64,000 nt of DNA from positions 124,001 to 188,000 of the IMG/VR virus record IMGVR_UViG_3300010334_000023, one strand, 5' to 3'. Each line of letters starts with the position of its first letter. Position 1 is the first letter of the stretch. The translations under genes and the position numbers were made by a program. Shown here piece after piece: positions 12,901 to 64,000 of this stretch. The notes beneath the pieces are model-generated. The model saw only the letters and a program-made list of their open reading frames with translations. It had not been told where the DNA came from and made no database searches.

Positions 12901-13368
12901 CCGCCTAGTGTTGAAACTCTCAACAGCACATTTGCTTACTTTGAACAGTTCAAGATGATGACTGATCAGATAGTTTGGCATCCTGTGACCTACAAGCTGC
13001 TATTTGGCGCACAGGCTCAGCCAGAATATCAGGTGCTGTTCAAGGTAGTCAAGGTGCCAGGGACCAGCTATAGCGACAACGAAGTAAAGAGCTTGGTCAA
13101 GAGCCAGATAGACACGTATTTCAGCCTCAGCAACTGGGATTTTGGTCAGAGCTTCTTCTTCACCGAGATGGCCACCTTCATACAGATGAATCTGGCTACC
13201 ATCGTGGCAACCATAGTAATGGTACCAACTAGCGGCTCTGCGAGATTTGGTGACTTGTTTGAGATAATTGCTGATCCTGATGAGATCTTCATCAGCTGTG
13301 CTACAGTTCAGAACATCGTTATAGTTGGTAGCCTCACAGAGGCACAGCTGGGGATAACCAATGGTTGA
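9964..13368 (+). CDS. Baseplate wedge subunit, gp6-like
   Basis: DFPTIRNAMVEY...ENFLDTAQRRSSIFRLARQLNY, LRFADGNFGNVP and QDRMVNGEDY motifs of the gp6/baseplate J family. Confidence 0.85.
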   Translation: MAVSQQQRQKQLFAAEDWQVIYQAFTQVNFNAYDFPTIRNAMVEYIRLNYPEDFNDWTESSEFVAIIDLLAYLGQSLAFRMDLNTRENFLDTAQRRSSIFRLARQLNYQPQRSIPSAGLLKINQIVSNQDIYDANGIDLKNTPINWNDPNNPDWQEQFILVLNAALNSTNYFGNPAKSGTVGTIPTELYALNNTAIPTSVIGFTSVVGGNSMNFELANPDFNAASGGNATVLGTTGYFFERDPNPVNSWYIIYQNDGNGYDSNNTGFFLFFKQGTMGYSDYLLELPIANRVIDVNIDGVNQTDVWVQNINTAGLVTTQWTAVPNVNGFNVIYNSLDSNIRNIYSVITRDNNGADQISLRFADGNFGNVPVGLLRVWYRVSNGLQYQIRPTDMTNLKFNFSYNDNLFNTYSVAFNTNLQYTVANSQTTQSNQQIQLAAEQVYYTQDRMVNGEDYNLFPLQSSQALKVKAINRVYSGQSRYLDINDPTGTYQNINVFATDGILYEETELNQQEVTITVGTPNQVYVVDNIQPMINGSTLFEGDSIELQNFYYDKFARYTAPGLYWNLTTANIGNSTGSFQIGGQAQRLGQDAAAGSGEQYIASGSLVKLVNGSNVGSWTSVVSVIGDGTGLNNSGVLANGLGAVTLSSVPDQYSTVTSICAPWTTTFTSAEISAITAAMNATQTFGIGYNQQTETWYVIDNDNLATGTAFSQTYSQDQTGTNRDSSWLIRVLYNTNSWIIQTRAQRYVFESVDEVRFFFSNSGKTIDSATGQILYDSVTVLGVNPAPLPPSPPPPLGIDYRWQIYGQEIYPDGYADPASVRVTFWSTQDQPLPNDPDQFVAIVKPTETPPQKFVFWVRYTSAEGYQYYQPIDIPQTRIYSVPSAVPVPPAGNWHEGELAYIISTSAFLQYVNGVLITVTGDYKVRLGRNNISYLWKHYATYQQRINPAIMNIIDIFILTTTYNQDLRNWIATGGNSYTKPQPPSVETLNSTFAYFEQFKMMTDQIVWHPVTYKLLFGAQAQPEYQVLFKVVKVPGTSYSDNEVKSLVKSQIDTYFSLSNWDFGQSFFFTEMATFIQMNLATIVATIVMVPTSGSARFGDLFEIIADPDEIFISCATVQNIVIVGSLTEAQLGITNG

Positions 13369-19300: not shown

Positions 19301-22300
19301 AACTGGGGCAAGATAGCACCTGGAACCAGCGTGGATGTTTATGAATGGGTACAGAGTCCTGTGTCTCCAGACATGTGGGCATCCTACGTGGCCAACCAGC
19401 AGGATTTCACGCAGTTTGGCATCAACTATACTCCCACAGGCACGGTATACAACAGCAGCGATCCTGCCTATACGCAGGTCACTGCTTATAATGCCAACGG
19501 CGTGTCGCAGTCGCTGTATTATTTCTGGGTAGCTGGTGCTATAACCCTGCCGTTGCCTGCCGGACGTAGCGTGACCACCGTTCAGATCAGCAAGCTGTTG
19601 ACCAATCCTAATGCCTATGGCCTACCTTGGTACGCAGCAATAGACGCACGTACCATCGTAGTCAGCGGCATTGGGCGTTATCTCAGCGGCACGGACACTG
19701 TGCTGAGCTTGCTCTACACGCATAAAACGAACCAACAGATAGATTACAAGCAGTATGATCTAGTACGAGCCAAAGATCCAGACAGCATACCAGAAGACTT
19801 CTTCTGGCTCAAGCTCAAGGACAGCCTCACTGGCAAGGATGGTCAAGACGAGAACGTTCCTGATCCCTATCTCAGCGACATCATGCGTAACGGTACTTTG
19901 ATAAGGCCGCGCCAGAGTTGGTTCAAATACCGTGTCATTGCTGCTGAGACATATGTTGCCGAAGCAAATAAGCTGCTTGGTACCATACTGCTAGTGCCAG
20001 ACATCAATCGCGGTAGTTGGGTCAATTACTTCTATCGGGTACAACCGCCGCCCAGTTCTGACTATAACGTGGGCACCCTAAGCAGCATGTATGCCCTGGG
20101 AGGCACCATACCATCTGGTAGCACCATAACAGTGCTGGCTGGTCCAGATACACAGAACCTATGGAAGCAGTACCAGTATCAGTTCAATGACGGCAAGTAT
20201 CTCTATACCGAGTTGGCTGTTCAGGCCTATAATACGCCAAATTATTGGTATTATGTGGATTGGTATCTGCCAAACAGCGGAGTGACCAGCACAACGGTGG
20301 TCAATTATACCGTGCCAACTGATGCTGATCGCACAGCCTATCAAGGTGTCAACGGGCTATTGATCAAGGTGCTCAATCGAGGCGATGGTTATTGGGCAAT
20401 CTACGAATGGATTGGCACTGCTGCCACAGGCAGCTGGGTCACTGTGGGTTATCAGAATGGCACCATACAGATCAGTACCGGAGTCTATGATGGTAGCATC
20501 AACACCATGCTGTTTGGTACCACACCGTTTGACAGCACAGGATTTGACATATTCCCGCATGTGGAATTTGGCAACATCATAGATGGTCTGCGCTACGCCA
20601 TATTCAATAACCCAAATCCCGCAGTTCCCGGTGAGAGCGTTTATCTAAACCAGCTGTTCTTTGCCATGATCGATTATGTTTTGGTTGAGCAAGGTTTTGT
20701 TGATTGGCTGTTCAAGACCAGCTTCATCTATCTCAGAGGTTTCAACATACCTCTGACAACCAGCCAGTTGTATCAGCCTGATTATGGTGAGGCGCTGCTG
20801 AGCTATCTCAATGAAGTCAAGCCGTACCATGCCAAGATCAGGCAGTTCGTGAACAGTCGCTCATGGACTGACAATGCGCTGATCAGCACCACTGACTTTG
20901 ACAACCCAAGCAATGCTAGCGTGACTACCAACATCGCTTACAGCAGTGCTGCATGGGAACAGAATTATCTTACCAATCCTGAGCTGATCAGGACCCTGAA
21001 GATAAAGATGCTGTTTGATAGAGTGTCGTCTGTGGCCAGAGGCTGGGACCGAACAAGTTGGTCAAGCTATGGCTGGGATGCTACCAGCGTGCCAAGCCAA
21101 GGCGCATTCCACAGGATACAAACATATTACGCTCCAACTGCTGACATGATACGCAAGGATGATCCTGCGCTGATACCAGGAGCTGATTTCCGTGGCATCA
21201 TAATGGATGCTCTTGGCTTTACCTTCGCACCAGGATGGCAGCTTACACCCTGGGACAGCCCAACTGGCTGGGATGCCGGCGAGGATGCGTTCACTGCCTA
21301 TCACGATATATTGGTGCAGGGCGGTATCGCACCAGAATACGACAAGTATTTTGGCACTGGTAACAGGAAGGTTTTCACCCTGAGCCGCATACCTCAGGAT
21401 CCTGCACATGTGGTGGTATGGGCTGACAGCATGCTGGCGCAATACGGGGTTGATTGGGTAATACCAAATAGCGTCAGTGGCCTCCAGCTAGTGTCAGCTG
21501 GACAGGATTACCAGATCGGAGATCAGCTGTATTTGGAATTCTCACCCGTGGTTGCTCCCACGAACATAACCGTGACAGGGATAGATGACCAAGGAGGCAT
21601 AACCGCATGGACCATCAACAGCAGCGGTAGTTACGATATATTCACTGGCCAGGCCATACCGGTTGCCTATCAACCCTACAGCATGGGCGCAGGATCTGGT
21701 GCTAGCTTCTCAGCTGTATGGTCTGGTAATACCTTGGTGTTTTATACTGCGCCTAGCAGCAATGCTTCACCTAATGTATTTGTGCTCTACGTTGGCACTA
21801 CCTTCCTACCAGCACCAACTGGTCCATTGGACATTGTCAATGATGGCAACAACTTCATAGAGCCATATGTGCAGTCTGATCATCCCGAGGAACTATATAC
21901 GACCAAGCTGCCATGGGGTATGAGGATAGACACTTATCAACAGCCAGTTGGCGGATCACCTCTGATATACATGCGAATATATCAGTTGGATGGCAAGAGA
22001 GATCATTTCCCACTGGGCATCGCACCCATGGATCAATCTGCTGTGATAGCGCAGATCGATGGCAAGATGCTGACATACGGTCTTGAAAATGACTATGTGA
22101 TCAACTGGACCACTAACACCATGGTGTTCTTGGAAGCGCCAACTGGTGTTAGCCTACAGATTTTGACCATTGGTGTTGGTGGTTCAGGAACAGGCATCGT
22201 CAGTCCCAAGGTGGTATCATATGGCATCGGTTACCAGCCGGGTGATGTGGTATACCTTGCCGGCGGCGTTACGGTAAACAATGATGCTGCCAGCGTTCAG

Positions 22301-24466
22301 GTAACGGCTGTGCGTGCTGCTCACATAACCATAGTATCTGGCGGTGCAGGTTATGTGCTGGGAGACGTCTTGGTGTTGCAGCCAGACAGCGACACCAGCG
22401 CTATATCATCGCTGGAGCTCACAGTGACCAACGTGATAACTTCTACAGGTACCATAATATCGGCATCCATCACTCAGTCTGGTGCGTACAAGTATCTGCC
22501 AGCAGACACAGTGTTCCTCACCAATGGAAAAGGAACTGGAGCTGAGATCACAGTAGATTGGGGAGTGCGGAGCGTGATCGCTGCTTCTCAGGGTACCTAT
22601 AGCCTCAAGCCAGATCAACCTATCGCACAATCCACCAGCTCTGGTTATGGCCTTGGTGCCACATTTGATGTGCTTTGGAGCGCAGTCAAGTCTACCAACA
22701 CATACACTGCCTCAGGTACACAAAATCAATTTGTCATAGATGTTGCTCCCATCAACAACGATGCCAACCTTCTGTTGGTAACCAGCAATGGTCAGGTACT
22801 CAATGCCAGCAACAGTGACATCACAGTCAATGGCAAGATAGTGACCATCACACCAACACCCACGGCAGGATCTACGGTGAGCATAACCGTGTTCAGCACT
22901 GCAAACTACAGCGTGGTGAACGATCAAGAGATAGTGATACAATATCAAATCTACAGCTATGCGTTGAATGAACCACCAGCCAGCACCCTGCCACCCTATC
23001 TCAGCACCACCGTAGCCTACGATGGTTATTATCTGCGAGGTCCGCAGATGGATGTCTACAGTGCCAGTGGCTATAACAACAGCTTCCCGGTTAGCTTTGT
23101 GCCTCCTGATCCTGCCAATCTGTTGGTATACGTACAGGATTATCTACAGACCTACAATGTTGACTACGTGATCTCTGGCAACAATGTGCTGTTTAATAAC
23201 ATACCTATAGCCAACGAAGTGATAGCTATGGTGGTGGTTGATCCGCTCTACGGATACAATTACCTCATAGGGAACCAAAGGATAGATTTGGTTTATGACC
23301 CACCTGTGAGTTGGAACCAAGGCTATTGGGACAACTATTTTGGATGGGATAGTGAGTATCAGAATCCCACTGCAGGCAGCATCGTCAAGGTAATCACCTA
23401 CAGCGAAGATGTCAGTTATCAGTTCAGGACACAGACTGAGCATGGTCCTTGCTATCCAAATGTTCCGGGTAACACACCTGGTACCTATGTGCTGATAACT
23501 CCGCCATATGACGACAGCACTCTCATGGTATGGCTCTATGATATCATGCAGACTCTGTTGTATGACTATTCCGTGATTACCGTAGATGCCATCCCAGGCT
23601 GGGGCATCACTCCGTGGCAGACCTATGGTTGGCAAACAGAATACCGTGGTGACAAAGCTGTGGTGTTTGCTCCTGGCAAGGCTGTGCTGCCTGGTGATGC
23701 TATCAGCATGCAATACATGACCGCTCTGCCTGAACGTTTGCCAATAGCCTGGCGCACCATAACTACCGGTGATCAGACTACCAGCACAGTGATCAGCGAT
23801 GCCAACAAGACCATATTGCTATCCACTGTATACTCTTACAGCACCAGCATTGAAGTCTTGGATGCCAGCGTGCTTGACCAACCCACTGACACTCAGCCTG
23901 GAACCATCTGGATAGGAGATGAGAGGATCAACTACTGGATGGTAGAACCTGCACCAGTTACGGCCGCATCAAACCGTGCGTTCTTGACACAGCTGATACG
24001 CGGCACCTATAACACTCCTAGTGGCAATGTCTCAGTGGGATATGACACCATATTCTATGATGGCAACGGCACGCAGACTTATTTCCCCACAGCTAGTGGC
24101 ACCCTACCTCCCGGAGGCAACGTGGCAGTGTTCGTGGGCAACCAGATACAGGTCGACTCTGCCATCAACTCCAATGTTGGTACATATATCATAGCAGAGA
24201 ATCCTCAGGGCCAGCGCCCCGGTACCTATGTGGTCTTTGCTAAGCCACCTGCGGTAGGATGGAGGAACGTGCGACTGAGCAGTCCTCGATCAGAGGTACC
24301 TGTGACCAGCCAGATCAGCCATGTGCAGGGCAGCACGGTTTTAGCTGCTGGCGCCGCAGAGACCATACCTGGTGGTTATCAATGGATAGCTGCTCCTAAC
24401 GGGCTGCAGTATGCCTCCTCAAGCCTAGCTAGATTCCTCTTAGAACACAGCGGAACACGCACATAA
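13361..24466 (+). CDS. Giant (3701 aa) baseplate wedge / fibre-platform protein (gp7-like position)
   Basis: Uninterrupted ORF after gp6-like gene; YLNEVKPYHAKIR wedge-type motif; repeated beta-sandwich modules (FGTGNRKVFTL, YDGNGTQTYF and similar); six triple-aromatic motifs. Confidence 0.75.
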   Translation: MVEKRRVISLLPAVNQTDTLTKFFSATVDHLFQPESVEFLSGYIGSKPPYYNAKTDFYVGEPTKSRQDYQLPVSAISANTYSGKVTNIMFYHDFVNSLLFQGAVTANQTRLFEQVYYSWSPPIDPDKLINFTKYYWVPVGPAPILLLNPTNLRQDAVGKPHYTYQGAYQLTGTSEIKVGSLVFSTGLVVTPTSDATGSINGTAYIINNVGRSIQLLTLDGFVDPNWDTRGWDTQGWDGDASIYVKDYTTIGRGPNPSNQWSINNRWFHEDVLLVSGTGTFPPYQTRAARPIIEFDYDLQLYNSGNRGRPSVTLIASDIADVMGTIVGQTSYTINGLELRDGYTLLVTGDADPLVNNRVYQVGGLSTLGVITLTQVGGAPAYGDAILVRYGTVAATQTISYTAPVQYWYDGTAWKRAQQRVPSVAPLFNLYDQYGNALDDPSVYSSSTFAGNSIFTYALDQYAVIDTELGIQIKLDQFGDYVFNNTLVTDTYTYVSDGSVVAIPGFAYYRNNASVAQYNNAWYRSPVPSRQYIVNDFTVNLPTAQFTIDQVPDPHPGPLPSIYVYLIYGGSSHLLVNDVDYTVSANVVTLTVPALSGQRVLVRSWNGTAAPINTVGYYELPLNLTANPDNEQVGNVGYSQFLQQFSSIIGNQPGLIGNALGNNNWRDTSKIRGLGLSILQHKAPMIKPMILSSGNITVGINTVMNHTEPMQAMQYAQNQYVRFYNRFIQSLYTLSANGFTANQQPSEWVSAALRQINLGKTPASPWANSGPDGPKAGYTYLRSTAPTWVPPTGTRLGITKAYIPTVYIQGLDLWIQCHDGARFVMAKDGLPLGSISYGLTSTSDPLLLTDPVAGAWLQFELDLFNNMPDAYSDSQAIMAFDITAYTPGRWRQGNYTRSEFLQVTYPIFDRWVITYQADYRANTTYDVNDPFTWNYSNLRDSDGGLVPGYWQGIYRWYYDTDRPHLAPWEMLGFSQQPPWWTEEYGPAPYTRGNTYMWSDLAAGRIRQGPRAGIYLPGVRPGLLSCIPVDAQGKLLPPTEAGCVVGLPSVAQAAAPWVYGDGSPVESVWIYSNEYTFVTAQYSYLMKPAQFIEYNWDTLRQQTVFADQPTAQTIYIDTDNRRPNNQLYVHRENPSAIGGNLNIPNESTLSYYGSGGVQHWITEYIVGQNLNVTQYFGSIVRGTVAQLAHQAGGFVTSNLYLTVDSFGQIGYTSQIIPSENVKTYLYKSASIRESYYSGVILTQVKDGWRVVGYDAIDQFFTIIPSNKYGSKTTIVVGNDRVYWYKVGVTAAQQISYGTVFNTKQEVFDFLISLQRYQEFQGFMFDQYNSDGNTTLDWLQAGREFLLWSQGNWANGNFIALSPLAIQVKYVQPFGTVQFVNGVVGGTYPVIDKLGQRIDGQNLEVLRYDDTITITATGMQNIYGMRLFANTLESVLVLDNRTSFDDTVYDPLYNLYQPRLRLYAYRTNDWDGRVDAPGFFLYQAGADNQWTLVTNFEKTANDFTKYFNIDQPKNHETIDPVTGNAVIVSTELAAVDNQVISDLSKHQIGYQHRPYLANLLLEESTEFQFYQGFIKQKGTLKAFDAILRNQAIVPPGSHYDYYEEYALRTSRFGSTAINTGIDFIVPQNQYINDPQQIQVFGLQNNDREYNGIITLIPHDPLILVPPISYSSENDPLFPLRTTTVPNYTTDLPTAGYVLIGETTFTAANTAVLSTFWETQNIAGNPIVNGDTVWQFIDNKQTWNVWKFSTANVNIVNTTPSIVTGQPTVINCSGNVGLKTGDLVVLDGISNVTALQGSFYVGNIVGDGRSFTVPVNTFTVGAGGNITAYKSTRFSTTQQRNRYPPLNGWQPGDISYVDVTDYGINGWTVYQYLNNSWIAIRAETYDVDASLMLQAKLYSESQGTVYTYPEYYDPAKGFIPSEARKNLDRISMYDPASYNTGNVDIINLDPMRAWGPEHIGETWWNLSSVRYLDYEISSNAYRWQNWGKIAPGTSVDVYEWVQSPVSPDMWASYVANQQDFTQFGINYTPTGTVYNSSDPAYTQVTAYNANGVSQSLYYFWVAGAITLPLPAGRSVTTVQISKLLTNPNAYGLPWYAAIDARTIVVSGIGRYLSGTDTVLSLLYTHKTNQQIDYKQYDLVRAKDPDSIPEDFFWLKLKDSLTGKDGQDENVPDPYLSDIMRNGTLIRPRQSWFKYRVIAAETYVAEANKLLGTILLVPDINRGSWVNYFYRVQPPPSSDYNVGTLSSMYALGGTIPSGSTITVLAGPDTQNLWKQYQYQFNDGKYLYTELAVQAYNTPNYWYYVDWYLPNSGVTSTTVVNYTVPTDADRTAYQGVNGLLIKVLNRGDGYWAIYEWIGTAATGSWVTVGYQNGTIQISTGVYDGSINTMLFGTTPFDSTGFDIFPHVEFGNIIDGLRYAIFNNPNPAVPGESVYLNQLFFAMIDYVLVEQGFVDWLFKTSFIYLRGFNIPLTTSQLYQPDYGEALLSYLNEVKPYHAKIRQFVNSRSWTDNALISTTDFDNPSNASVTTNIAYSSAAWEQNYLTNPELIRTLKIKMLFDRVSSVARGWDRTSWSSYGWDATSVPSQGAFHRIQTYYAPTADMIRKDDPALIPGADFRGIIMDALGFTFAPGWQLTPWDSPTGWDAGEDAFTAYHDILVQGGIAPEYDKYFGTGNRKVFTLSRIPQDPAHVVVWADSMLAQYGVDWVIPNSVSGLQLVSAGQDYQIGDQLYLEFSPVVAPTNITVTGIDDQGGITAWTINSSGSYDIFTGQAIPVAYQPYSMGAGSGASFSAVWSGNTLVFYTAPSSNASPNVFVLYVGTTFLPAPTGPLDIVNDGNNFIEPYVQSDHPEELYTTKLPWGMRIDTYQQPVGGSPLIYMRIYQLDGKRDHFPLGIAPMDQSAVIAQIDGKMLTYGLENDYVINWTTNTMVFLEAPTGVSLQILTIGVGGSGTGIVSPKVVSYGIGYQPGDVVYLAGGVTVNNDAASVQVTAVRAAHITIVSGGAGYVLGDVLVLQPDSDTSAISSLELTVTNVITSTGTIISASITQSGAYKYLPADTVFLTNGKGTGAEITVDWGVRSVIAASQGTYSLKPDQPIAQSTSSGYGLGATFDVLWSAVKSTNTYTASGTQNQFVIDVAPINNDANLLLVTSNGQVLNASNSDITVNGKIVTITPTPTAGSTVSITVFSTANYSVVNDQEIVIQYQIYSYALNEPPASTLPPYLSTTVAYDGYYLRGPQMDVYSASGYNNSFPVSFVPPDPANLLVYVQDYLQTYNVDYVISGNNVLFNNIPIANEVIAMVVVDPLYGYNYLIGNQRIDLVYDPPVSWNQGYWDNYFGWDSEYQNPTAGSIVKVITYSEDVSYQFRTQTEHGPCYPNVPGNTPGTYVLITPPYDDSTLMVWLYDIMQTLLYDYSVITVDAIPGWGITPWQTYGWQTEYRGDKAVVFAPGKAVLPGDAISMQYMTALPERLPIAWRTITTGDQTTSTVISDANKTILLSTVYSYSTSIEVLDASVLDQPTDTQPGTIWIGDERINYWMVEPAPVTAASNRAFLTQLIRGTYNTPSGNVSVGYDTIFYDGNGTQTYFPTASGTLPPGGNVAVFVGNQIQVDSAINSNVGTYIIAENPQGQRPGTYVVFAKPPAVGWRNVRLSSPRSEVPVTSQISHVQGSTVLAAGAAETIPGGYQWIAAPNGLQYASSSLARFLLEHSGTRT

Positions 24467-44377: not shown

Positions 44378-45652
44378 TCAAGCAGCCTGTCCGATCTCTT
44401 CCACACCCGTGTCGTGATCATAGTAGGCATACTGACCAAACGGTGGCTTCACGCGAGTCTTGTGACCCTCTGTGATGATCCACAGCGTGTCGCAGTAGCT
44501 CTCTGGGCCCCAAGTACCAAACGGATAACCGTCTGTGAACACCACTGCTTTCTTGGGCTCGATCTGCTCACTCATCCAATAGTTCCAGAACGCCATGAAA
44601 TCTGTACCGCCGCCACCCTTGCATTCATAGTTCAGCAGGTCGTCTGCGCTGTCCTTGGTGAACTTCTGGAAGTTATAGACCTGTGTGTCAAAGCAAAGGA
44701 TGCTGATGGTGAAGTCATTGTACATGCTCATGATGCCATAGACTTCACTGAGAAAGTCCTTGGCCATGCTGTCGCTGATGGAACCACTCATGTCGATAGC
44801 AATGGCAATGTCAATGGTATCGTCCTTGTCCAGTGTTGGCAGGAAGATGCCACCATACATGTGCTTGCGATTGGGGCGCATCCAGGTAAAGTCATCAGTG
44901 ATGCAGCTCTGGATGTTCTGCTGCAGGAGATCGCGCCAGTTGATCTTTGGCTCTACCAGATCATCAATGATGCGCTGTAGGCTAGCTGGCATCTTGCCAG
45001 CACTAGCCTGCGCTGCCTGCAGCACCTTGTTCTTCATCTCTTCGCGGATCTTCTTGAGATCTTCTTCGCTGACCTTGATTGGATTGCCATCCTTGTCCAC
45101 GGCCTGTCGACCCTTGCCATCCTTGCCGTTGCTGTCACCGCCAAGCTCCAGATGCACGTCCATGGTCAGCTGCTTCTTGACCTTGCGCTTTTCGAGATCA
45201 TCATAGACTGCCTCAGAAGTCCAACCCAGATACTTCTCATCATACAAGCCCACACGCTGGTTGGTCTCGCCCTTGTCGTCAACCTCGGTGACCTTCTTGG
45301 TAGGCATCTTGCCGATCTTATCTGAGGTAAGCATGCCGTTGATCACATAGTCGTTGGCCATGTTCCACCAGCTGGGGTCGCGGTGCGTGCGGCGACCAAA
45401 ATGGTCCAGAGCCACGTGCAGCACCTCGTGGCACAGCACGAACTTGATCTCGTCGATGTCAAGGTCCTTGAAGAAGTCTCGATTGTAATAGATGTTGCGG
45501 CCGTCCACGGCTGCAGTGCTGCACCAACCTGCGTCAGTGGCATCTACCAAAGGCAGCTGCATGGTCAGCGTGCCAAAGAACGGCGTCTTGAACAGCAGTT
45601 CCAGTCGCGCTTGGCTGATCTTCTTGGTGATTGGATCTCGTTGAATTGACAT
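44378..45652 (-). CDS. HExxH metallopeptidase-like plus vWA domain protein (DUF2201-type)
   Basis: TAAVDG, LCHEVLH, WNMANDYVIN; MIDAS IDMSGSI, GGGGTDF, VFTDGY; GGAGG RBS before ATG 45652. Confidence 0.85.
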   Translation of the reverse strand: MSIQRDPITKKISQARLELLFKTPFFGTLTMQLPLVDATDAGWCSTAAVDGRNIYYNRDFFKDLDIDEIKFVLCHEVLHVALDHFGRRTHRDPSWWNMANDYVINGMLTSDKIGKMPTKKVTEVDDKGETNQRVGLYDEKYLGWTSEAVYDDLEKRKVKKQLTMDVHLELGGDSNGKDGKGRQAVDKDGNPIKVSEEDLKKIREEMKNKVLQAAQASAGKMPASLQRIIDDLVEPKINWRDLLQQNIQSCITDDFTWMRPNRKHMYGGIFLPTLDKDDTIDIAIAIDMSGSISDSMAKDFLSEVYGIMSMYNDFTISILCFDTQVYNFQKFTKDSADDLLNYECKGGGGTDFMAFWNYWMSEQIEPKKAVVFTDGYPFGTWGPESYCDTLWIITEGHKTRVKPPFGQYAYYDHDTGVEEIGQAA

Positions 45653-45671
45653 TGTGTACCTCCAATGAACC

Positions 45672-45699
45672 ATGATAGCACATATTACCAGGGCGTCAA
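45672..45699 (-). promoter_or_regulatory. Sigma70-type early promoter TTGACG-N16-TATCAT
   Basis: Intergenic; TGC immediately before the -10, shared with sister promoters. Confidence 0.65.
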
Positions 45700-45726
45700 C
45701 CACTAAGCTGACGCCCTGTGAGTTAT

Positions 45727-46920
45727 TTAGATGCTAGGGATGAGATCGCTGTAACGCTTGCAGAACTCTACCCAGTTCTTCAGCTTTGGCGCCTGCAGAG
45801 GCAGCTTGTAGGTACCCATGATGGTCTTGGCACCCATCACAGCCAGCTCGTCTTCAAAGTTGTCCATGATGAAGCGGAAGAACGTGTCTACCTTGGCTTG
45901 GAAGGCGTCATTCTTCTTGTTGTCTTCCTTGACACCTTTGCTGGCATCAGTGAGCTCGTAGCACAGCGCAGTGGTCAACGCATACATCACGTCGATCTGC
46001 TTGGTGTTGAGCTTGGTGACCTTGCCTTCCAAGATGTCCTTGGCATTGGGCAAGTTAGCAGCCTGCTTGCGATAGGTCATGAACTTGATTCCGGGACCTT
46101 CGCCCACTGTGCCCTTGATGAGATCACCCAGAGACTCGTCTGTCAAGCGCACGTCTACCATGTCGCCGTCCTTGTTAGGCTCCTGCAGCAGCTCGCTAGC
46201 AAAGAACCATGAACGAGGCGTGGCGAACGCATAGCTGTCCGCGCTGGGTTGGAAGTTCATCAAGTCGTTGGGCTGGAAGCTGAGATAACCAACCACGTCC
46301 TTGTGCACGCGGTTCAGCAGAGCCCATTCTTTCCAGTCGTCAATGCTGACATCCAAAGTTACGTGCGTGAAGCGGTTAGCCAGAGGCATGGGCATGTTGT
46401 AGGCCACGCCCTTGTCCTTGACACGGTTGCCTGCGGCAACGATCACCACATCCTTGGGCAGCTCGTAGGTACCAATCTTGCGATTGAGGATCACCTGATA
46501 GGTAGCTGCCTGCACGCTGGGAGGCGCTGCGCTCATCTCGTCAAAGAACACCAATGCGCGGCTGTTGGGGTCTGTGGGCAAATCGCTGGGATTGCTCCAC
46601 TTAAAGACCTTCTCTGTCAGCGGCACGTTGGCTTCGTCGCGCACCAAGTTTCCTTGTGCGTCGTATACCTTGACCTCAGCGAGATAAGGGATACCGCGCA
46701 CGTCTGTGGGCTCCATCAGAGGCAGTCGGATGTCGATAAGTGGGCGATTCTGTTCGCGTGCTACCTCAGCAACGATATCAGATTTGCCAATGCCCGGTGG
46801 ACCCCAAACGAAGATAGGACGCTTGCGGTTGATGCTGTGGGTCAGCGCAGTCTTGAGGCGTGATGGGGAAATGCCAGTGTTTTCCAGCATGCGAGTCTTG
46901 GTAGCAGAAGCGTTAGCCAT
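45727..46920 (-). CDS. MoxR-like AAA+ ATPase
   Basis: Walker A GPPGIGKS, Walker B FFDEM, AAGN, LANRF, TPRSW; adjacent to the vWA gene. Confidence 0.88.
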   Translation of the reverse strand: MANASATKTRMLENTGISPSRLKTALTHSINRKRPIFVWGPPGIGKSDIVAEVAREQNRPLIDIRLPLMEPTDVRGIPYLAEVKVYDAQGNLVRDEANVPLTEKVFKWSNPSDLPTDPNSRALVFFDEMSAAPPSVQAATYQVILNRKIGTYELPKDVVIVAAGNRVKDKGVAYNMPMPLANRFTHVTLDVSIDDWKEWALLNRVHKDVVGYLSFQPNDLMNFQPSADSYAFATPRSWFFASELLQEPNKDGDMVDVRLTDESLGDLIKGTVGEGPGIKFMTYRKQAANLPNAKDILEGKVTKLNTKQIDVMYALTTALCYELTDASKGVKEDNKKNDAFQAKVDTFFRFIMDNFEDELAVMGAKTIMGTYKLPLQAPKLKNWVEFCKRYSDLIPSI

Positions 46921-46948
46921 TGTATGTGGTCTCCGTTGTTGTGATCTT

Positions 46949-46976
46949 ACACTAGCATGTTTTGTATACCTGTCAA
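46949..46976 (-). promoter_or_regulatory. Sigma70-type early promoter TTGACA-N16-TAGTGT
   Basis: Intergenic; same architecture as neighbouring promoters. Confidence 0.6.
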
Positions 46977-46985
46977 CCAGAAAAA

Positions 46986-47261
46986 TCAAGAGCTCCAGTA
47001 GCTCTCGCTTCTGGGACTGGCATGATAGGGAGTGTCGTAACGTTCGTGGAATTCCCTGCCAGTGATGATGTTCTTGCGCATCACCATGGTCTCATGTATC
47101 TCAAAGCTGAAGCCCTGGGCCGAGGGATAGAGATGCAGCAGCTCGCGCACTTCGCGCGTCATTGCCGCGAGATCGGGCCTATCGTAGTCATACTTGCCGC
47201 AGAGCCGCTTTCCGCTCTTTTGGCGCTTGTCGACCTTCCAGATTTCCATGGTGTAAAGCAT
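46986..47261 (-). CDS. Hypothetical early protein
   Basis: GGGAG RBS, own promoter; C-terminal DTPYHASPRSESYWS. Confidence 0.7.
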   Translation of the reverse strand: MLYTMEIWKVDKRQKSGKRLCGKYDYDRPDLAAMTREVRELLHLYPSAQGFSFEIHETMVMRKNIITGREFHERYDTPYHASPRSESYWSS

Positions 47262-50611: not shown

Positions 50612-51205
50612 TTAGCTATGCTCGGTCTTACCATCCTCTCGCCGAATGCGACGAACATTGCTGACAAACTCTGGATCAGTGGGGGCCATCTCTGCTAGTA
50701 TGCTGTTACAGACATCGTTTAGCCAGCGGTTGATCACGTCCTCGTCGCTGCCCTGATAGTTATTAGCTCGCAGAGACTGCACGAATGCATCGTTGTAATC
50801 TAGCTCAAAGAAGGTCTTGCTGGGATCAACCGGGTCCCAGCTGATCTTGGGCATGGCCATGTAGGGTTCGTTCTTGATGTCTGCGGCCTTGCGTTCGTGT
50901 TCTGGTGCGCTTATGCGATTGTGCTTGAGTTCCACATCCAGCTTGGCCAGTGCCAACGCAGTCTCGTCAGAGTTGTCTAGTTCTGCCAATCTGCTATCGC
51001 GATCATAGGCGCTGATCTTGCCGTAAGCCAGATCGATGTCCAACACGCTCTTGGTAAAGGCCGGGCTATCTAGCCCGTGGCCGATCCGGGCCTTGGCAAT
51101 GTCTAGATCATAGCCTGTGAGATAGTATTCAGCTTCTGCCAGTTCTCGGCTCTTGCCTTTTAGTCCCCAGGCAGCTGGTAACCAACCAAACGGTATCTTG
51201 CTCAT
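50612..51205 (-). CDS. Hypothetical phage protein
   Basis: Start at MSKIPFGWLP; FFELDYND...INRW. Confidence 0.65.
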   Translation of the reverse strand: MSKIPFGWLPAAWGLKGKSRELAEAEYYLTGYDLDIAKARIGHGLDSPAFTKSVLDIDLAYGKISAYDRDSRLAELDNSDETALALAKLDVELKHNRISAPEHERKAADIKNEPYMAMPKISWDPVDPSKTFFELDYNDAFVQSLRANNYQGSDEDVINRWLNDVCNSILAEMAPTDPEFVSNVRRIRREDGKTEHS

Positions 51206-51207
51206 GC

Positions 51208-52119
51208 TTATCTTCCTATCACGTTGCTGAAGATCCAGCAGTGTATGCGAGCTGCTACGTTGTAGCCGCGCTTGAGCGCTTCTTCCGTGACCCACATCTG
51301 CACGTCTTCCTGTTCTTCTCGAGTAGCCCCCACAGGCATGACCCACACTGGCCAGTTCACGTCTGCTGCGCGGAAAGCATCAACTGCTCGCTCTAGTTCA
51401 TCCCAGGTCAGTGGATTCTTGTCAAGCACGAACTTCAGCTGTCCGTGATTGCTGATCAGCCTGTATTCGCGCACGATCTCTGGCTTGATAGCATCTGTCC
51501 AGCTCTCGCCTGAAGTGCCCAGCTTGGGGCTCACGCTCCAGAACAGCTCGCCATTGTACATGCCGCGATTGTTAAAGAACTCATCAAAGTTCTTGCGCAC
51601 AGCCTGCGTGCCGTTGGTCTCTATGGTGATGTGGCGAGGCATGTCCATCTGCATGCGAAGCGTCTGCATGATGTCCACGATGCCTGTCTGGCTCATCATG
51701 GGTTCGCCGCCGGTGAATGCTAGATGCACGTCCTGTCCGCTGCGAGGATGCACAAATGATCCTCCCTGCAGCCTGCTGCGAAAATCTGCGCAGATCTCTT
51801 CTGCTGTGCTCTGATGTGCCAGATGGCCATACTTGGTGCTCCAGCTGTAGCTGCTATCGCAGCCAGTTGTCCACACCGGCAGATCATCCATCTTGGTGAT
51901 GCCGTTGGCCTGAGGGTCGTATTCCTGATAATCTAGCTTGTAGGTGCTGCGATCTCTGGGATTAGCCTGTCCAAATCCGTCACAGTTGAAGTTGCAGCCC
52001 CAGAAGCGTATCCAAACTGTGGGATGACCAGCATACCTGCCTTCGCCCTGTATGGTAGGAGTAGGACCAGCGTTGCCTCCAAAGGTCTCGCTGTAACGGT
52101 ACTTCTTGGCAGTGCTCAT
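51208..52119 (-). CDS. queE: 7-carboxy-7-deazaguanine synthase (radical SAM)
   Basis: TIQGEG..AGHPTVWIRFWGCNFNC...CDS, FTGGEP, IETNGT, SVSPKL, RIH; clustered with queD and folE. Confidence 0.9.
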   Translation of the reverse strand: MSTAKKYRYSETFGGNAGPTPTIQGEGRYAGHPTVWIRFWGCNFNCDGFGQANPRDRSTYKLDYQEYDPQANGITKMDDLPVWTTGCDSSYSWSTKYGHLAHQSTAEEICADFRSRLQGGSFVHPRSGQDVHLAFTGGEPMMSQTGIVDIMQTLRMQMDMPRHITIETNGTQAVRKNFDEFFNNRGMYNGELFWSVSPKLGTSGESWTDAIKPEIVREYRLISNHGQLKFVLDKNPLTWDELERAVDAFRAADVNWPVWVMPVGATREEQEDVQMWVTEEALKRGYNVAARIHCWIFSNVIGR

Positions 52120-53744: not shown

Positions 53745-54239
53745 TCATATCAGTTCCTCGTTCCACTCCCTGTGTCCTTCTCTAAAGGCCATGTTAGCTT
53801 GCGTTTCGCGCACTTCTACGCGATAGCACCATAGGCGTTCTGACTCGCCTTGGCCCCAGAGATCTGGGATGTATACACTGTTAATATAATTGTATAACAT
53901 GTCAGCTAGGCCTTCGCAACCAAGCCGGGGTAGGATAGTGAGCTTGGCTAGACGCTTGCTTTGTAGCAACTTAAACGTTTCCAGTTCCGGATCATCTTCT
54001 GCTACCAGCAGCGTGTGATCAAACTGGTCTTCCAGGGTCTTCTTGAGTTCCTTGAGACCGCCATAGTCAGCTGCCCAGTTGCGCACATCCAGATCGTTGG
54101 TGCCAAAGTAGAACTTCATGCTGAACGCATAGCCGTGGATCATGTTGCAGTGGCTGTCAGCACGCCACTGGCGATATGCGCAGGGAAATGCATCCACGTA
54201 TTCCTTGGTGCTGGTGTACTTGTAGGTGATTGGTGTCAT
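53745..54239 (-). CDS. queD: 6-carboxy-5,6,7,8-tetrahydropterin synthase
   Basis: SHCNMIHGY (CxxxHG), DYGGLK, FDHTLL, VEVRET; AGGAG RBS. Confidence 0.9.
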   Translation of the reverse strand: MTPITYKYTSTKEYVDAFPCAYRQWRADSHCNMIHGYAFSMKFYFGTNDLDVRNWAADYGGLKELKKTLEDQFDHTLLVAEDDPELETFKLLQSKRLAKLTILPRLGCEGLADMLYNYINSVYIPDLWGQGESERLWCYRVEVRETQANMAFREGHREWNEELI

Positions 54240-54246
54240 GTTTGTG

Positions 54247-54310
54247 CTCCTATGTTGTTATACCATAGGCTGCAGAATTTGTATAGCGGGAATGAAGCCA
54301 AGCGCCGCTT
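54247..54310 (-). promoter_or_regulatory. Structured queD leader: candidate pseudoknot/riboswitch with RBS-sequestering hairpin, overlapping a possible internal promoter
   Basis: AGCGG/CCGCU stem, A-rich linker, loop GGCU complementary to downstream AGCC, CCUAUG/CAUAGG hairpin covering AGGAG. Confidence 0.45.
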
Positions 54311-54317
54311 GTCATAC

Positions 54318-55004
54318 TTATCTTGGTGCGAAATCTTGCTGAAGCTTGACATTGTCGAAGAACTCTTTTTTAGTGCTCTGATCGTTAAAGAACGCGCCTC
54401 GCAACACCGTGGTCTGTGTTAAGCTGCTGTGTGCCATGATGCCGCGATTCTCGCAGCAGCCATGAGAAGCTTGTATGTACACAGCCACGTTCTCGCTGTC
54501 TGTGGCTCTTTGTATCTCTCTGGCTATGTCGTTGCAGAGCTCTTCCTGCAGAGTCCCACGCCTAGCGCACCACTGAGCAATGCGAGTATACTTAGACAGT
54601 CCGATAAGCTTACCAGCGGCAATGATCCCAATATAAGCAACACCGTGAACGGGTTGGTGATGATGGCTACAAACACTACGCAGCTCGCTGCGAACCACAA
54701 GCATACCTTGGTAACGATCTTCGCTGTCATTGGGAAAAGCTGTAGCAGCTGGGATTGGGTCATATCTACCTCGCATCAGTTCCTTGACATACATCTTGGC
54801 CAGGCGTCGGCCCGTGTCATGGCTGTTTGGATCATTCTCGCGATCGATGATCAAGCTGTCTAACACCGCGTCGAACCGTGCATTGAGCTCGTCGATTAGC
54901 TGATCTTGTTCTCCTGGTTCTATGTATGCGCTGATGTTGTCGTTGGCATTGAATCTAGCACCGGCGGCTTTGATACGCTGGCGAATGGTTTCACTTACTG
55001 TCAA
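54318..55004 (-). CDS. folE: GTP cyclohydrolase I
   Basis: DTGRRLAKMY, SVCSHHHQP, IGLSKYTR, LQEEL, HGCCENRG; TTG start with GGGAG RBS. Confidence 0.95.
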   Translation of the reverse strand: MTVSETIRQRIKAAGARFNANDNISAYIEPGEQDQLIDELNARFDAVLDSLIIDRENDPNSHDTGRRLAKMYVKELMRGRYDPIPAATAFPNDSEDRYQGMLVVRSELRSVCSHHHQPVHGVAYIGIIAAGKLIGLSKYTRIAQWCARRGTLQEELCNDIAREIQRATDSENVAVYIQASHGCCENRGIMAHSSLTQTTVLRGAFFNDQSTKKEFFDNVKLQQDFAPR

Positions 55005-59396: not shown

Positions 59397-62300
59397 CTAG
59401 AGATCCAAAGCAGTCCTAACCACCTTTATCACCATGTTTTGGCTGGTATTCGGGGTGAACAGCAGCTCAACTATGCCTCCCACGATGTCAGCAGACCAGA
59501 TGCCGAGGCTGGTGCTGGTATAGATGTCAGCATATTCAGTGAAAAACACATCTGTACCATCTTGGATCAGCATCAGTTGGCTGCTCTGATAGCTGCTGGT
59601 AGCAGTGTTGGTTATCTGCAGCAGATAGTGCGCTGTGCGGAACTGAGTGGTTGGCCACGAATCAACCACAGATTGGAAGGTGCTGTTGCTGGTATAAGCA
59701 TTACCGTCTAAGACCCAGGTGTTGCCGCTAACATAGCCGTTGCTCTGCAGCACCTGTACGTTGGCAAAGCCAATGCTGTTGATCTGGTTGAAGCTGCCTA
59801 TGTTGGCATAGCTAGCAGCAACATCGTTGGTGACCGTGAGATTGCCCAATACTGACAGGTTGTTGTTGAAAATAGTGCTGTTGCTGACTGTGAGATTGCC
59901 TAGCACAGCAAGGTTAGACGCAAAGGTGCTGTCCTTGCTCACTGTGATGTTGCCCAGCACTGATAGATTGCTGTTGAAGAGGCTGTCCTTGCTCACTGTG
60001 ATGTTGCCCAGCACTGATAGATTACTGCTGAAACTGCTGTCAGTGAGAACAGTGATGTTGCCTAGCACAGCAAGGTTAGACGCAAAGGTGCTGTCCTTGC
60101 TCACTGTGATGTTGCCCAGCACTGATAGATTGCTGTTGAAGAGGCTGTCCTTGCTCACTGTGATGTTGTTCTGGAACACAGCAGCATTGGACACGCTTAG
60201 TGCACCGCCCACTGAGAGATCGCTGCTTATGTTGGCAGCATAAGCATATAGTGCTCCGTACACAGCTAGATTGCTGCTGACATTCACGTTGCTGGCTATG
60301 AGGCTTAGATTACCTAAGCCATTGCTGGTGCTGCCGCCGCTGGCCAAAATCCTCGCATCATAGTCGTTGCCAAATATGCTGCTATGGAAATCCACGTATG
60401 GTGTGCCAGCTGTGATCCTATTCTGCTGTCCCAGCTCTATGCTGCCATTGGTATCACCACCGATGATCACAGTGCCTGTGGTACCTGAGCTGGCAGTTAG
60501 GCTGCCACCAACCAGCGCATCCAATCCTATGGCAGCCCCGCCCTTGGTCACAAAGCTAGCTGAGCTTAGACTGCTGCTGTTAACTGTGCTGTTGATCAGC
60601 AGCCCTTGTCCATAGATGAACCTTGCCACTTGATTAGCAGCCGCATTGCCACCTTGGGCAAACACGATGTCGTTGTTGAGCATGGTGCCGAGCACGAGAT
60701 TACCACCGCCCGTGACAGCGTTACCGTACATCAATAGGTAACCATCGTTTGCATGGTCAATGGTAGCTTGGTTCCATCCGCTGCTGTTGATGCCCAGATC
60801 TATGTAGGTGTTGACAGCAGTGCCATTATCCGCTGTGACCACTATGTCTGCGCTGGCGCTGTCACCTGAGCTGTCATTGTGCACGTTTATCTGTGAGCTG
60901 GCATTTACGTTGCCTGCGAACAGTGCTACGGTATTTGGTTGGTAATTGGTATAGTCCTGCACACCAGCGTAGAGCGCAGCAAAGCCGCCGGCTCCGCCTG
61001 TAAACGTGCCGGTCTTGCCACTGATTATGCTGGTATTGCTACCGTTTAAGTTTCCACCTAGCCTGATGTTTAGTCCAACATCCAGGCTGGACACGTTGGC
61101 AGTATTAAGAACAGCGAGATTAGCAGTGTTCAGGCTGACGTTGCCGGCATCCCAGAACAGGCTAGCACTGTTGCCACTGAAGGTATTGCTGTTGCCGGCA
61201 AACTGTATGGTATATTGTGGACCAAAGCTTGGTGTATAGGATGCTGCTGTAACCTGGAAGCTGCCATCTGGGAACAGTATGCCACTGGTAGTTGATGCTG
61301 TGTTACCTATGTGTAGGTTACCATAGACATCCAGTGGATATCTAGCAGTGCTGGTGCCGATACCTATGTTCGAGTTGCTGATCAGCGTGTTAGCAACAAA
61401 GTTTGGCGCAGATATCAGTCCTGTAGCTAGTACATTCTGAGTGAACAGCGTGTTCACGCCTATGATGTTGCCTCCTGATCCAGTAGTAGTGATAGTACCG
61501 CTGGTAACAAGATTACCAACCGTGGCGTTGCCCGTGGACTGTATGGTAGTGTTGCTGATCAGACCATTGACGGTGGCTGTACCGGCGCTCTGTATGCTGC
61601 TGTTGCTGACCAAGCTGCTTCCGATAATAGCACCGTTGGCCTGTATGGTTGTGTTGCTTAGCAAGCTGTTAGCAGTGATGGTATCTGCTGCCTGTATGCT
61701 GGTGTTGCTGATCACTGTGTTGAACAGACCGGTACCAGGTGCCTGGACGTTGCTGCCGCTCACTATGTCATAGAGCTGTGCCAGTCCCAACGACTGTATG
61801 GTAGTGTTGCTGAACAGGCTGTTGCCTGTGATCGATCCGTTGGCCTGTATGTATGTGTCGCTGGCAATGCTGCCTGCGATCACCGCACCGTTGCTGATCA
61901 TGCTCTGACCAGTTATGGTACCATTGGCCTGTATGAAGCTGTTGCTGATAAGATGTGCAGCTCTGACAAAGCCCACAGATTGTACATAGATATTGGTTTC
62001 CAGCAGCTGTCCGTACATGCCAAAGGTTGAGTAGATCTGGGTATTGCTGGTGATTATCTCAGCAACCAAACGCCTGCCGGCTGTGATATTGTCTGCTGAA
62101 ACGTTACCGCTGACATCCAGCCTGCCACCGATGAGCACGTTGCCATATACTTCCAGATTGGCCTCTAACAGCGCACCATTGCCCACCACCAGATTATCTG
62201 TGAACACGGTGTTATCGGCAGTGATGTTGCCGTTGCTGTTGAAGCTGTTGGCTCTGATCTTTCTGCTAGCAGTGAGAAATTCTGTGGTGATGTTGCCGCT

Positions 62301-64000
62301 GTTTACTATGATGTTTGAATAAACTGTATCGATGGTAGCAGCGTCGCTGACTGTGAGATCTGTGGTAGTGATGCTGGTGTTGCTGACTATGCTGTTGGCA
62401 GTTAGCAATGACGACGCGGTGATATCTGGGCTGGTAATGCTGAGATTACCCACGATCACATCTGCCACTAGATTATTGCTCACCGTGACATTGGTCACGT
62501 CCAAAGAAACGTTGGCAGCGATAACATTGGCAGATATCTTGTTGACTGCGCTGATATCAGTGGCACTGATATTGGTATTGCTGTTTAGCGAGTTGACCTG
62601 TGCCAAACCGCCAGTGATCAGCGTGGTAGTTACTATTGTGCTGTTGGCCACCACGTTCTGTGCAGAAACCAACACAGTAGCTTGGACATTTGGCGTGATA
62701 ACAGCTAGATTACCAACCAGCAGGTTACCAGTTATGTTGTTGAGAGCAGTGATACCTGCTGAGGTCACGCTGGTGTTAGCAGCGATTAGATCCCCGCTGA
62801 CTCTGTTGGTCACGCTGATGTTGGTGCCGCTTATCTCGTTGTTGGCATGTATGTTGGAACCAATCACCAATCCCACAGCTGAGATAGCAGTGTTGGAATT
62901 CAGTTGATTAGCTAATAGATCTTGACCAAAACGTCCCTGTCCTGTGGTAGCTATCTGGCCTAGGGCATTGACAGCACCGCCTATGCCCACACCGCCATTT
63001 ACTACCAGCGCGCCGCTGGTGCTGTTGATGCTGATGGTAGCATTGCTAAGCAGCAGGTCACCAAACTGAGCAGCACCATAAACGTATCCTGGTACGCTGG
63101 TAAAAGGATTTACCACATTGCTGATACCTGGCTGCACGTTGGTTAGGTAAACGAACCTACCAGTGCTGTTCTGGAAGCCCATGAATGCGTTGTTGTCGTT
63201 GAGGATGAAATAGTTCATCACAACGCCGCGATCATAACCGTCGTTGTACGTGAGAATATTGCCTTCGCCGTTATCAGATCCGACTTTTATGGTAGGACCT
63301 GTCACGCTGATGCTATTGCTGTTGACGATGGTGCTGTTGCCGCGAACGATGAAGTTACCGCTGACTACCAGATTGCCGGTGAACAGGCTCTGCTGCCCCC
63401 CTACATTGAGATTGCCACCTATGCCCACACCACCTGTGACTATCAGCGCGCCGGATCCGGTGCTACCGCTGGCTGTGTTGTTGGTAATTGTTACAACGCC
63501 GCTGGCAGCGATGTTAGCCGCTGTGATACCCACATTGCTGACTATGGTGTTGCTGCTTAATTGGTTAAGAGCATTGATAGCAGGTGACGTAATACTGAGA
63601 TTGCTGTTGATGGTGTTGGCTAGGATACCTTGTGCTGCTTGTATGCTAGTGTTGCTGGTTATGGTCTGCACCACAGCATTGGTGATGATGTTCAGCGTGC
63701 TAGCAGTGGCTTCTGTGTTGCTGATCAACTGATTGACCACAGCGATGCCAGTGGTCTTTAGTGTCTGGCCTTCTATGAAGCTGTTGCTGCGGACCTGCTG
63801 GCCTGATACAAGCCCGTTGGCACTTACCGCAGCATTGCTGCTGAGAGTGCCTACCTGTGCACCGTTCTCGACTACCAGCGTGCTGGTGGTGCTGTTGTTG
63901 TTGACGATCAGACTGTTTACGTTAGCTAGACCACTGCTCTGCAGGGAAGCACCGAAAACATTGTTGTTGCCTATCAAGCTACTGATCTGTGCCACGCCTG
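59397..64000 (-). CDS. Large tail-fibre / adhesin-like virion protein, N-terminus beyond the window
   Basis: Frame open to the edge; N/S/G/I/V-rich beta-helix repeats; fibre motif YVDFHSS..NDYDARI; C-terminal domain FRTAHYLLQI...TEYA. Confidence 0.75.
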   Translation of the reverse strand, partial: GVAQISSLIGNNNVFGASLQSSGLANVNSLIVNNNSTTSTLVVENGAQVGTLSSNAAVSANGLVSGQQVRSNSFIEGQTLKTTGIAVVNQLISNTEATASTLNIITNAVVQTITSNTSIQAAQGILANTINSNLSITSPAINALNQLSSNTIVSNVGITAANIAASGVVTITNNTASGSTGSGALIVTGGVGIGGNLNVGGQQSLFTGNLVVSGNFIVRGNSTIVNSNSISVTGPTIKVGSDNGEGNILTYNDGYDRGVVMNYFILNDNNAFMGFQNSTGRFVYLTNVQPGISNVVNPFTSVPGYVYGAAQFGDLLLSNATISINSTSGALVVNGGVGIGGAVNALGQIATTGQGRFGQDLLANQLNSNTAISAVGLVIGSNIHANNEISGTNISVTNRVSGDLIAANTSVTSAGITALNNITGNLLVGNLAVITPNVQATVLVSAQNVVANSTIVTTTLITGGLAQVNSLNSNTNISATDISAVNKISANVIAANVSLDVTNVTVSNNLVADVIVGNLSITSPDITASSLLTANSIVSNTSITTTDLTVSDAATIDTVYSNIIVNSGNITTEFLTASRKIRANSFNSNGNITADNTVFTDNLVVGNGALLEANLEVYGNVLIGGRLDVSGNVSADNITAGRRLVAEIITSNTQIYSTFGMYGQLLETNIYVQSVGFVRAAHLISNSFIQANGTITGQSMISNGAVIAGSIASDTYIQANGSITGNSLFSNTTIQSLGLAQLYDIVSGSNVQAPGTGLFNTVISNTSIQAADTITANSLLSNTTIQANGAIIGSSLVSNSSIQSAGTATVNGLISNTTIQSTGNATVGNLVTSGTITTTGSGGNIIGVNTLFTQNVLATGLISAPNFVANTLISNSNIGIGTSTARYPLDVYGNLHIGNTASTTSGILFPDGSFQVTAASYTPSFGPQYTIQFAGNSNTFSGNSASLFWDAGNVSLNTANLAVLNTANVSSLDVGLNIRLGGNLNGSNTSIISGKTGTFTGGAGGFAALYAGVQDYTNYQPNTVALFAGNVNASSQINVHNDSSGDSASADIVVTADNGTAVNTYIDLGINSSGWNQATIDHANDGYLLMYGNAVTGGGNLVLGTMLNNDIVFAQGGNAAANQVARFIYGQGLLINSTVNSSSLSSASFVTKGGAAIGLDALVGGSLTASSGTTGTVIIGGDTNGSIELGQQNRITAGTPYVDFHSSIFGNDYDARILASGGSTSNGLGNLSLIASNVNVSSNLAVYGALYAYAANISSDLSVGGALSVSNAAVFQNNITVSKDSLFNSNLSVLGNITVSKDSTFASNLAVLGNITVLTDSSFSSNLSVLGNITVSKDSLFNSNLSVLGNITVSKDSTFASNLAVLGNLTVSNSTIFNNNLSVLGNLTVTNDVAASYANIGSFNQINSIGFANVQVLQSNGYVSGNTWVLDGNAYTSNSTFQSVVDSWPTTQFRTAHYLLQITNTATSSYQSSQLMLIQDGTDVFFTEYADIYTSTSLGIWSADIVGGIVELLFTPNTSQNMVIKVVRTALDL
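59830..60170 (-). repeat. 54-bp (18-aa) tandem repeat array inside the fibre gene, with an exact 111-bp duplication
   Basis: NL[SA]VLGN[IL]TVS.DS.F.S units; 59896-60006 identical to 60058-60168 (offset 162 = 3 x 54). Confidence 0.9.

Follow-up and report, generated by a model that had tools for sequence, protein, structure and literature searches.

The stretch of DNA examined here (the window) comprises 64,000 nucleotides of IMG/VR virus record IMGVR_UViG_3300010334_000023, and all coordinates refer to it. On its minus strand, a gene for GTP cyclohydrolase I (folE; PF01227, E = 2.7e-38) is followed, after a 78-nt spacer, by a gene of the QueD/PTPS (6-carboxytetrahydropterin synthase) family (PF01242, E = 2.9e-16). 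A QueE-like radical-SAM gene lies further downstream. The original prediction placed in the spacer a small pseudoknot resembling a preQ1-I riboswitch, together with a competing hairpin that buries the Shine-Dalgarno (SD) sequence. Every element that it described was found, as listed here.

54318-55004 (-): folE, the upstream neighbor, not part of the element
54320-54318 (-): folE stop codon TAA
54309-54305 (-): P1 5' strand, AGCGG
54304-54300 (-): L1, CGCUU
54299-54296 (-): P2 5' strand, GGCU, inside the P1 loop
54295-54290 (-): L2, UCAUUC, ending in a C next to the P1 3' strand
54289-54285 (-): P1 3' strand, CCGCU
54284-54272 (-): L3, a 13-nt linker, AUACAAAUUCUGC
54271-54268 (-): P2 3' strand, AGCC, whose CC is shared with the 5' arm of the hairpin
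54269-54249 (-): predicted sequestering hairpin, with arms CCUAUG (54269-54264) and CAUAGG (54254-54249) and a 9-nt loop, covering AGG of the SD
54251-54247 (-): SD sequence AGGAG, 7 nt upstream of the AUG
54285-54257 (-): sigma-70-like site, TATACA (54285-54280), a 17-nt spacer, and TGG-TATAAC (-10 at 54262-54257)
54239-54237 (-): queD start codon AUG
53745-54239 (-): queD, the putatively regulated gene

The folE-queD spacer and its surroundings

Folding of the single sequence was uninformative. The minimum free energy (MFE) of the spacer was -19 kcal/mol, with a z-score of -0.50, and 58 of 200 shuffled sequences folded as well; z-scores for four relatives were -0.54, -1.34, +0.13, and -0.16. 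A search of Rfam 15 at E <= 10, using 3 kb and 121 nt of the window and 121 nt of each of two other variants, returned only chance fragments of miRNA, snoRNA, or lncRNA families. This search covered the preQ1 families, a match to which had been named beforehand as a test of the riboswitch idea, and none of preQ1-I (RF00522), preQ1-II (RF01054), or preQ1-III (RF02680) was listed. An intrinsic terminator for folE was also rejected, as P1 has only 5 bp and no U-run, and a terminator scan found none. The evidence that the structure is more than chance is comparative.

Some features of the surrounding genes are also worth recording. The folE open reading frame (ORF) is listed from a TTG start, but its Pfam match begins only at residue 56, and the true start may lie further downstream. 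The ORF listed downstream of queE (50612-51346, minus strand) overlaps queE (51208-52119, minus strand) by 139 nt and hits phrog_13349, a virion structural protein family; its listed GTG start is probably too far upstream. At 44378-46989 (minus strand), a DUF2201 metallopeptidase/VWA-like protein lies next to an AAA ATPase, a pair that resembles a MoxR-type ATPase with a VWA partner. A 1,532-aa ORF with no Pfam match (59397-63995) is on the same strand as the que genes. On the plus strand, a single 3,701-aa ORF with no Pfam domain (13361-24466) lies just downstream of a baseplate-hub/lysozyme protein (6547-9480; Phage_base_V plus Phage_lysozyme) and a 1,134-aa ORF, and may be a giant tail or host-recognition protein.

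A conserved, covarying pseudoknot upstream of queD

The window matches a 216-kb IMG/VR contig with 100% identical QueD and FolE proteins and has hundreds of relatives among aquatic viral contigs. In contrast, blastn of the gene pair found only distant gene hits among 50,697 GenBank phage records, and blastn of two motif variants found nothing there. The four nearest queD genes of cultured phages overlap their upstream gene and have no leader. The commonest motif variant, the only one scanned against one genome from each of 185,579 bacterial and archaeal species, gave a single hit, which is a chance match inside a coding region with no P1.

We next asked whether the element belongs to queD or to the folE-queD junction. 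Direct adjacency of folE and queD is rare among relatives, in which the two are usually separated by 0.4 to 2.8 kb of other genes. However, the roughly 85 nt before the queD start are conserved in all 75 distinct upstream regions, whatever gene precedes them. A covariance model built from the aptamer gave one hit in the window at 49.6 bits (E = 6e-17), with the next best at 7.7 bits, and exactly one strong hit (35 to 67 bits) in each of 80 IMG/VR loci chosen only by QueD homology, always on the queD strand just upstream of the gene. The core 19-mer likewise occurs once in the 64 kb, against 0.01 expected. With a single copy per window and per locus, a generic repeated phage promoter or regulatory box was rejected.

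In the reverse test, a search of IMG/VR with the RNA core alone returned 120 loci, of which 118 had a readable downstream ORF. In 115 of these, that ORF is a QueD homolog, 35 to 91% identical to that of the window. The other three have one inserted ORF and then queD: a 113-aa cupin-like protein in locus L198 (35 to 377 nt after the motif) and, in loci L229 and L235, a protein of 282 to 293 aa (about 50 to 930 nt after the motif) that looks GIY-YIG-like by eye and is possibly a homing endonuclease. A second scan that excluded the commonest P1 found 95 more copies with complementary P1 strands, AGAGG/CCUCU and AGUGG/CCACU; judging from their N-terminal sequences, the ORFs behind these look like very different QueD types. 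One relative (L025:80-130) has an intact L2, P1 3' strand, L3, and P2 but no complementary P1 5' strand, and may be a degenerate copy or a recombination breakpoint close to the contig end. Overall, the proteins behind the motif span 23 to 100% pairwise identity, with a median of 47%.

Absence of covariation among homologs had been named in advance as an outcome that would overturn the pseudoknot. We tested this in two alignments, A1, with 149 distinct aptamers, and A2, with 70 loci chosen by protein homology alone. In A1, 93.0% of cells formed a standard pair, against 70.8% with shuffled partners, and the covariation score was 0.565 against 0.162; in A2, the corresponding values were 90.2% against 71.4% and 0.467 against 0.145. 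In neither alignment did any of 500 shuffles reach the observed score, and sliding the partners by 1 to 3 columns gave at most 0.143 (A1) and 0.127 (A2). Because our motif searches required P1 complementarity, A1 is biased for P1, whereas P2 was never used for selection; A2 was selected by protein only, but was aligned with a model that encodes P1 only and was itself built from A1. Both helices of the H-type pseudoknot are thus confirmed by covariation.

Three of the five P1 pairs show changes on both sides (AGCGG/CCGCU, AGAGG/CCUCU, AGUGG/CCACU, ACCGG/CCGGU, and UGCGG/CCGCA), with over 99% of cells paired and the top pair G-C in all sequences. All five P2 columns show compensatory changes, with up to six pair types in one column; examples are GGCU/AGCC, GGCA/UGCC, GGCG/CGCC, GGUG/CACC, GACAU/AUGUC, GACUU/AAGUC, and GACGC/GUGUC. 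An unconstrained best-helix test for P2 was noisy because of a competing GCAU/AUGC match. It was replaced by a register-constrained partner-shuffle test, in which 0 of 1,000 shuffles were as good as observed. P2 is short, and in the subtype of the window (type A, below) it is often only 3 to 4 bp with mismatches; nevertheless, within type A it averaged 3.52 bp against 3.12 ± 0.08 bp, and within types B and C, 5.10 against 3.71 ± 0.13 bp. G.U pairs outnumber A.C mismatches 87 to 21 on the queD-sense strand, indicating an RNA that folds on that strand rather than a DNA cruciform or an antisense RNA.

The unpaired parts of L2 and L3 are nearly invariant. L2 follows U-C-A-(U)-Y-C and is mostly UCAUC in relatives; in the 70 loci of A2, the U, C, and final C are invariant, A is present in 66, and the base preceding the final C is U in 62. 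L3 has the consensus N-U-A-N-A-W-A-Y-U-C-U-G-C, with an A-rich first half and a conserved YUCUGC, and is 13 nt long in nearly all copies. Some invariant L3 columns in A1 were imposed by our search patterns, but A37, A43, U45, C46, and G48 are also invariant in A2, where the selection step avoids this. L1 varies in length (4 to 10 nt), usually reading N-C-U-U plus 0 to 6 variable bases, with the CU at positions 2 and 3 conserved in at least 90% of the 149 sequences; the window is atypical here.

Competing helices and sigma-70-like sites

Three downstream designs were observed. In type A (the window and 98 distinct relatives), the hairpin CCUAUG-loop-CAUAGG hides the SD. In types B and C, the P2 3' strand plus the next three or four bases pairs with the start codon and the following codon, as in AAGUCAUC with GAUGACUU, UGUCAUC with GAUGGCA, and UGCCAUUG with CAAUGGCA. 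The helix between the P2 3' strand region and the SD/AUG region averages 6.04 bp, against 5.13 ± 0.07 with shuffled partners (0 of 300 as high), and appears in the nested MFE folds of four representatives. In every design the P2 3' strand is shared, so that the knot and the sequestering helix exclude each other. In the window, the hairpin has an energy of -7.3 kcal/mol, against -4.2 kcal/mol for the bare P2 duplex, and the AGG of the SD is paired with a probability of about 1.0 in the nested ensemble. The type A arms are almost invariant and their covariation is thin, although variants keep the pairing (UCUAUG/CAUAGG, 7; CCUAUA/UAUAGG, 2; CCUAUG/UAUAGG, 2); as an inverted repeat around a -10 box, they could also be a DNA operator. 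In type B and C loci (e.g., L296:4022-4105), the pentamer UCAUC occurs twice, in L2 and in the bases after the P2 3' strand (GUCAUC), and both copies are complementary to the GAUGR around the start codon. L2 could therefore also contact the start region in these types, which type A start contexts do not allow.

The original prediction also offered an alternative, that TATACA-N17-TATAAC is a promoter whose transcript starts within the hairpin and frees the ribosome-binding site, as in T4. In a 350-nt frame around the motif, sigma-70-like sites cluster at only two positions. At the first, the -10 hexamer starts 11 to 25 nt before P1, in 29 of 96 type B/C copies and 7 of 98 type A copies, which would put P1 at the very 5' end of the mRNA, as expected for a leader element. 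The second is internal, 45 to 54 nt after the start of P1, in 86 of 98 type A copies and 1 of 96 type B/C copies. There, the first half of L3 reads TTTACA and the hairpin loop holds TGnTATAAT, an extended -10; the usual form is TTTACA-N17-TATAAT, and loop variants keep the TA...T of a -10 box. The window's own TATACA-N17-TGG-TATAAC lacks the last T of the -10 and fails a scan for hexamers with a 16- to 18-nt spacer that keep A2 and T6 of the -10. With the window failing, most type A relatives passing at the same place, and no 5'-end data in existence, these observations do not settle whether a sigma-70 promoter operates here. The promoter alternative was also partly right, but a promoter cannot explain the covariation of P1 and P2.

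It had also been proposed that queD transcripts starting only downstream of the stem would count against the RNA element. The transcript evidence on this point is weak. Only one metatranscriptome run, from a lake, holds the region, as low-depth contigs without strand or end information. One contig (depth, 2.4) covers the P1 loop (54292-54299) and carries the 1-nt deletion and 2-nt insertion typical of a relative's L2 and L1; DNA carry-over is not excluded, but a related copy is present in an RNA library.

Interpretation as a probable queD leader switch

Taken together, we regard with high confidence the queD leader as a conserved, structured, queD-specific RNA with two mutually exclusive folds that control ribosome access. 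The analysis itself demonstrates the H-type pseudoknot, with a 5-bp P1 and a P2 joining 4 to 5 loop bases to those that follow the 13-nt linker; the near invariance of L2 and L3 beside two covarying helices; and the reuse of the P2 3' strand as the 5' strand of a second helix that pairs with the SD in type A or with the AUG and next codon in types B and C. What follows is inference. Without help, the sequestering helix would win and queD would stay untranslated, whereas a factor that stabilizes the knot would free the ribosome-binding site and turn translation on. That factor is most likely a small molecule bound at the P1/P2 junction by the conserved L2 and L3 bases, which would make this a riboswitch with ON logic (probability of about 0.55, a moderate confidence). 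The element has the general features of a riboswitch, namely a conserved aptamer with covarying helices and invariant junction bases, in the 5' leader of a functionally coherent gene set, joined to an expression platform with mutually exclusive pairing. Direct, protein-free ligand binding was not assayed, no ligand is known, and an ON switch on a biosynthetic gene is unusual for the queuosine pathway, in which all known preQ1 riboswitches are OFF switches. The invariant C next to P1 suggests a ligand with a guanine-like face, such as a 7-deazaguanine or pterin pathway compound (dihydroneopterin triphosphate, a reduced folate or pterin, or preQ0), although its identity is speculation. In type A relatives, the internal promoter probably coexists with the switch; a transcript starting about 7 nt after its -10 would lack the knot and the 5' arm of the hairpin and so have a free ribosome-binding site, an unregulated bypass. 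The window's copy of this promoter looks weak.

The original prediction was therefore accurate as an observation. Its interpretation is partly supported: the pseudoknot, the competition between P2 and the helix that hides the ribosome-binding site, and the tie to queD all hold, while membership in the preQ1 families is not supported, and its suggestion that a pathway metabolite is sensed was not put to the test here.

The main rival, which we consider less likely, is that the same switch exists but is not thrown by a small molecule. The trigger could be a protein (a host factor such as ribosomal protein S1, a phage translational regulator, or QueD itself), or the switch could be kinetic, with the knot forming first on the nascent RNA and allowing a burst of translation before the mRNA relaxes into the sequestered form. 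Nothing in our data identifies the trigger, the knot lies upstream of its competitor and is transcribed first, and leaders that bind proteins can be equally well conserved. The S15-rpsO operator, an mRNA leader that alternates between a pseudoknot and hairpins, is a precedent for a protein selecting one of two folds (PMC3985624). In rpsO, however, the pseudoknot is the repressed, protein-bound form, whereas here the knot is the form with a free ribosome-binding site, and no binding protein is known. The motif sits in front of QueD proteins as little as 23 to 35% identical, on contigs of about 5 to 380 kb, making a common phage-encoded binding protein unlikely, and autoregulation by QueD would need a conserved RNA-binding surface. 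In addition, about 15 near-invariant unpaired bases are more than a purely kinetic trap needs.

It is also possible, but unlikely, that the element is a divergent preQ1-I riboswitch that binds preQ1 or preQ0, or shares ancestry or a pocket layout with that family. Of the defining features of preQ1-I (PMC11625349), it has a very small H-type pseudoknot with short P1 and P2, a G-C closing pair of the 5-bp P1, and a C directly 5' of the P1 3' strand that is preceded by U, as in type I (types II and III have A); whether this C reads a ligand was not examined. The A-rich start of L3 with invariant adenines, the location in front of a queuosine/7-deazaguanine biosynthesis gene, and control of translation are also shared. 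Other features disagree. Beyond the lack of a covariance-model match, the L1 base directly after the P1 5' strand is not a conserved U (A 57, U 55, C 36, and G 1 of 149), with the conserved CU following one base later, and L1 is longer. L3 is 13 nt rather than about 6 to 8 nt and ends in UCUGC, so that the base before P2 is C and not the ligand-reading A. P2 ends 7 or more nt before the SD instead of P2 or the tail including it (or a terminator competing), and a separate helix hides the SD or AUG, so that knot formation should switch translation ON rather than OFF. Binding of preQ1 was not measured. The element was found only on phage contigs here, and we do not file it as a preQ1-I member. 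As for preQ1-II and preQ1-III, these have a larger HLout-type pseudoknot, and the element has only two helices in about 55 nt.

An effect at the DNA level only, with the internal site as promoter and the CCTATG/CATAGG repeat that brackets its -10 as operator, is very unlikely, as it cannot explain the compensatory changes in P1 and P2, which lie upstream of the -35 and in the spacer, the excess of G.U over A.C, or types B and C, which keep the knot, L2, and L3 without this site in all but 1 of 96 copies.

Two other kinds of system can be compared. In other pseudoknot riboswitches with ON logic at translation (e.g., guanidine-III, ZTP, and fluoride), a ligand-stabilized tertiary pairing likewise competes with a structure that blocks expression, and conserved junction bases sit beside covarying helices, but there is no sequence or model similarity and the gene context differs. 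In phage T4-type translational control by alternative transcripts, as in type A relatives if the internal promoter is active, a transcript would start inside the sequestering hairpin and free the ribosome-binding site. Here, however, the upstream part of the leader is itself a conserved, covarying pseudoknot rather than just the other arm of a hairpin, and types B and C have no such promoter cluster. The T4 mechanism itself was not tested in this analysis.

The best reading is thus a new phage-specific riboswitch-like class with an unknown ligand, which differs from the known preQ1 riboswitches in linker, platform, and inferred logic. Literature searches, in a collection that omits most subscription journals, found no description of this motif. 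Riboswitch classes confined to viruses are almost unknown, and every known queuosine-pathway riboswitch is an OFF switch in bacteria. This would be an abundant, very small RNA of about 55 nt with ON logic, offering a new aptamer fold or ligand to study and a compact ON-switch part for synthetic biology, and its hundreds of natural variants and three natural expression platforms make the hypothesis directly testable. It lies in front of the enzyme that commits GTP-derived pterin to 7-deazaguanine synthesis, a pathway linked in other phages to protection of phage DNA from restriction (PMC6884629). More tentatively, a new riboswitch class found only in phages so far, with a minimal pseudoknot aptamer, may turn on queD translation in response to a guanine-faced metabolite, for example, the QueD substrate dihydroneopterin triphosphate, a reduced pterin or folate, or a 7-deazaguanine. 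Such a switch would let the phage gate the first committed step of its 7-deazaguanine DNA-modification pathway according to the metabolic state of the host, and would show that phages regulate DNA-hypermodification genes after transcription.
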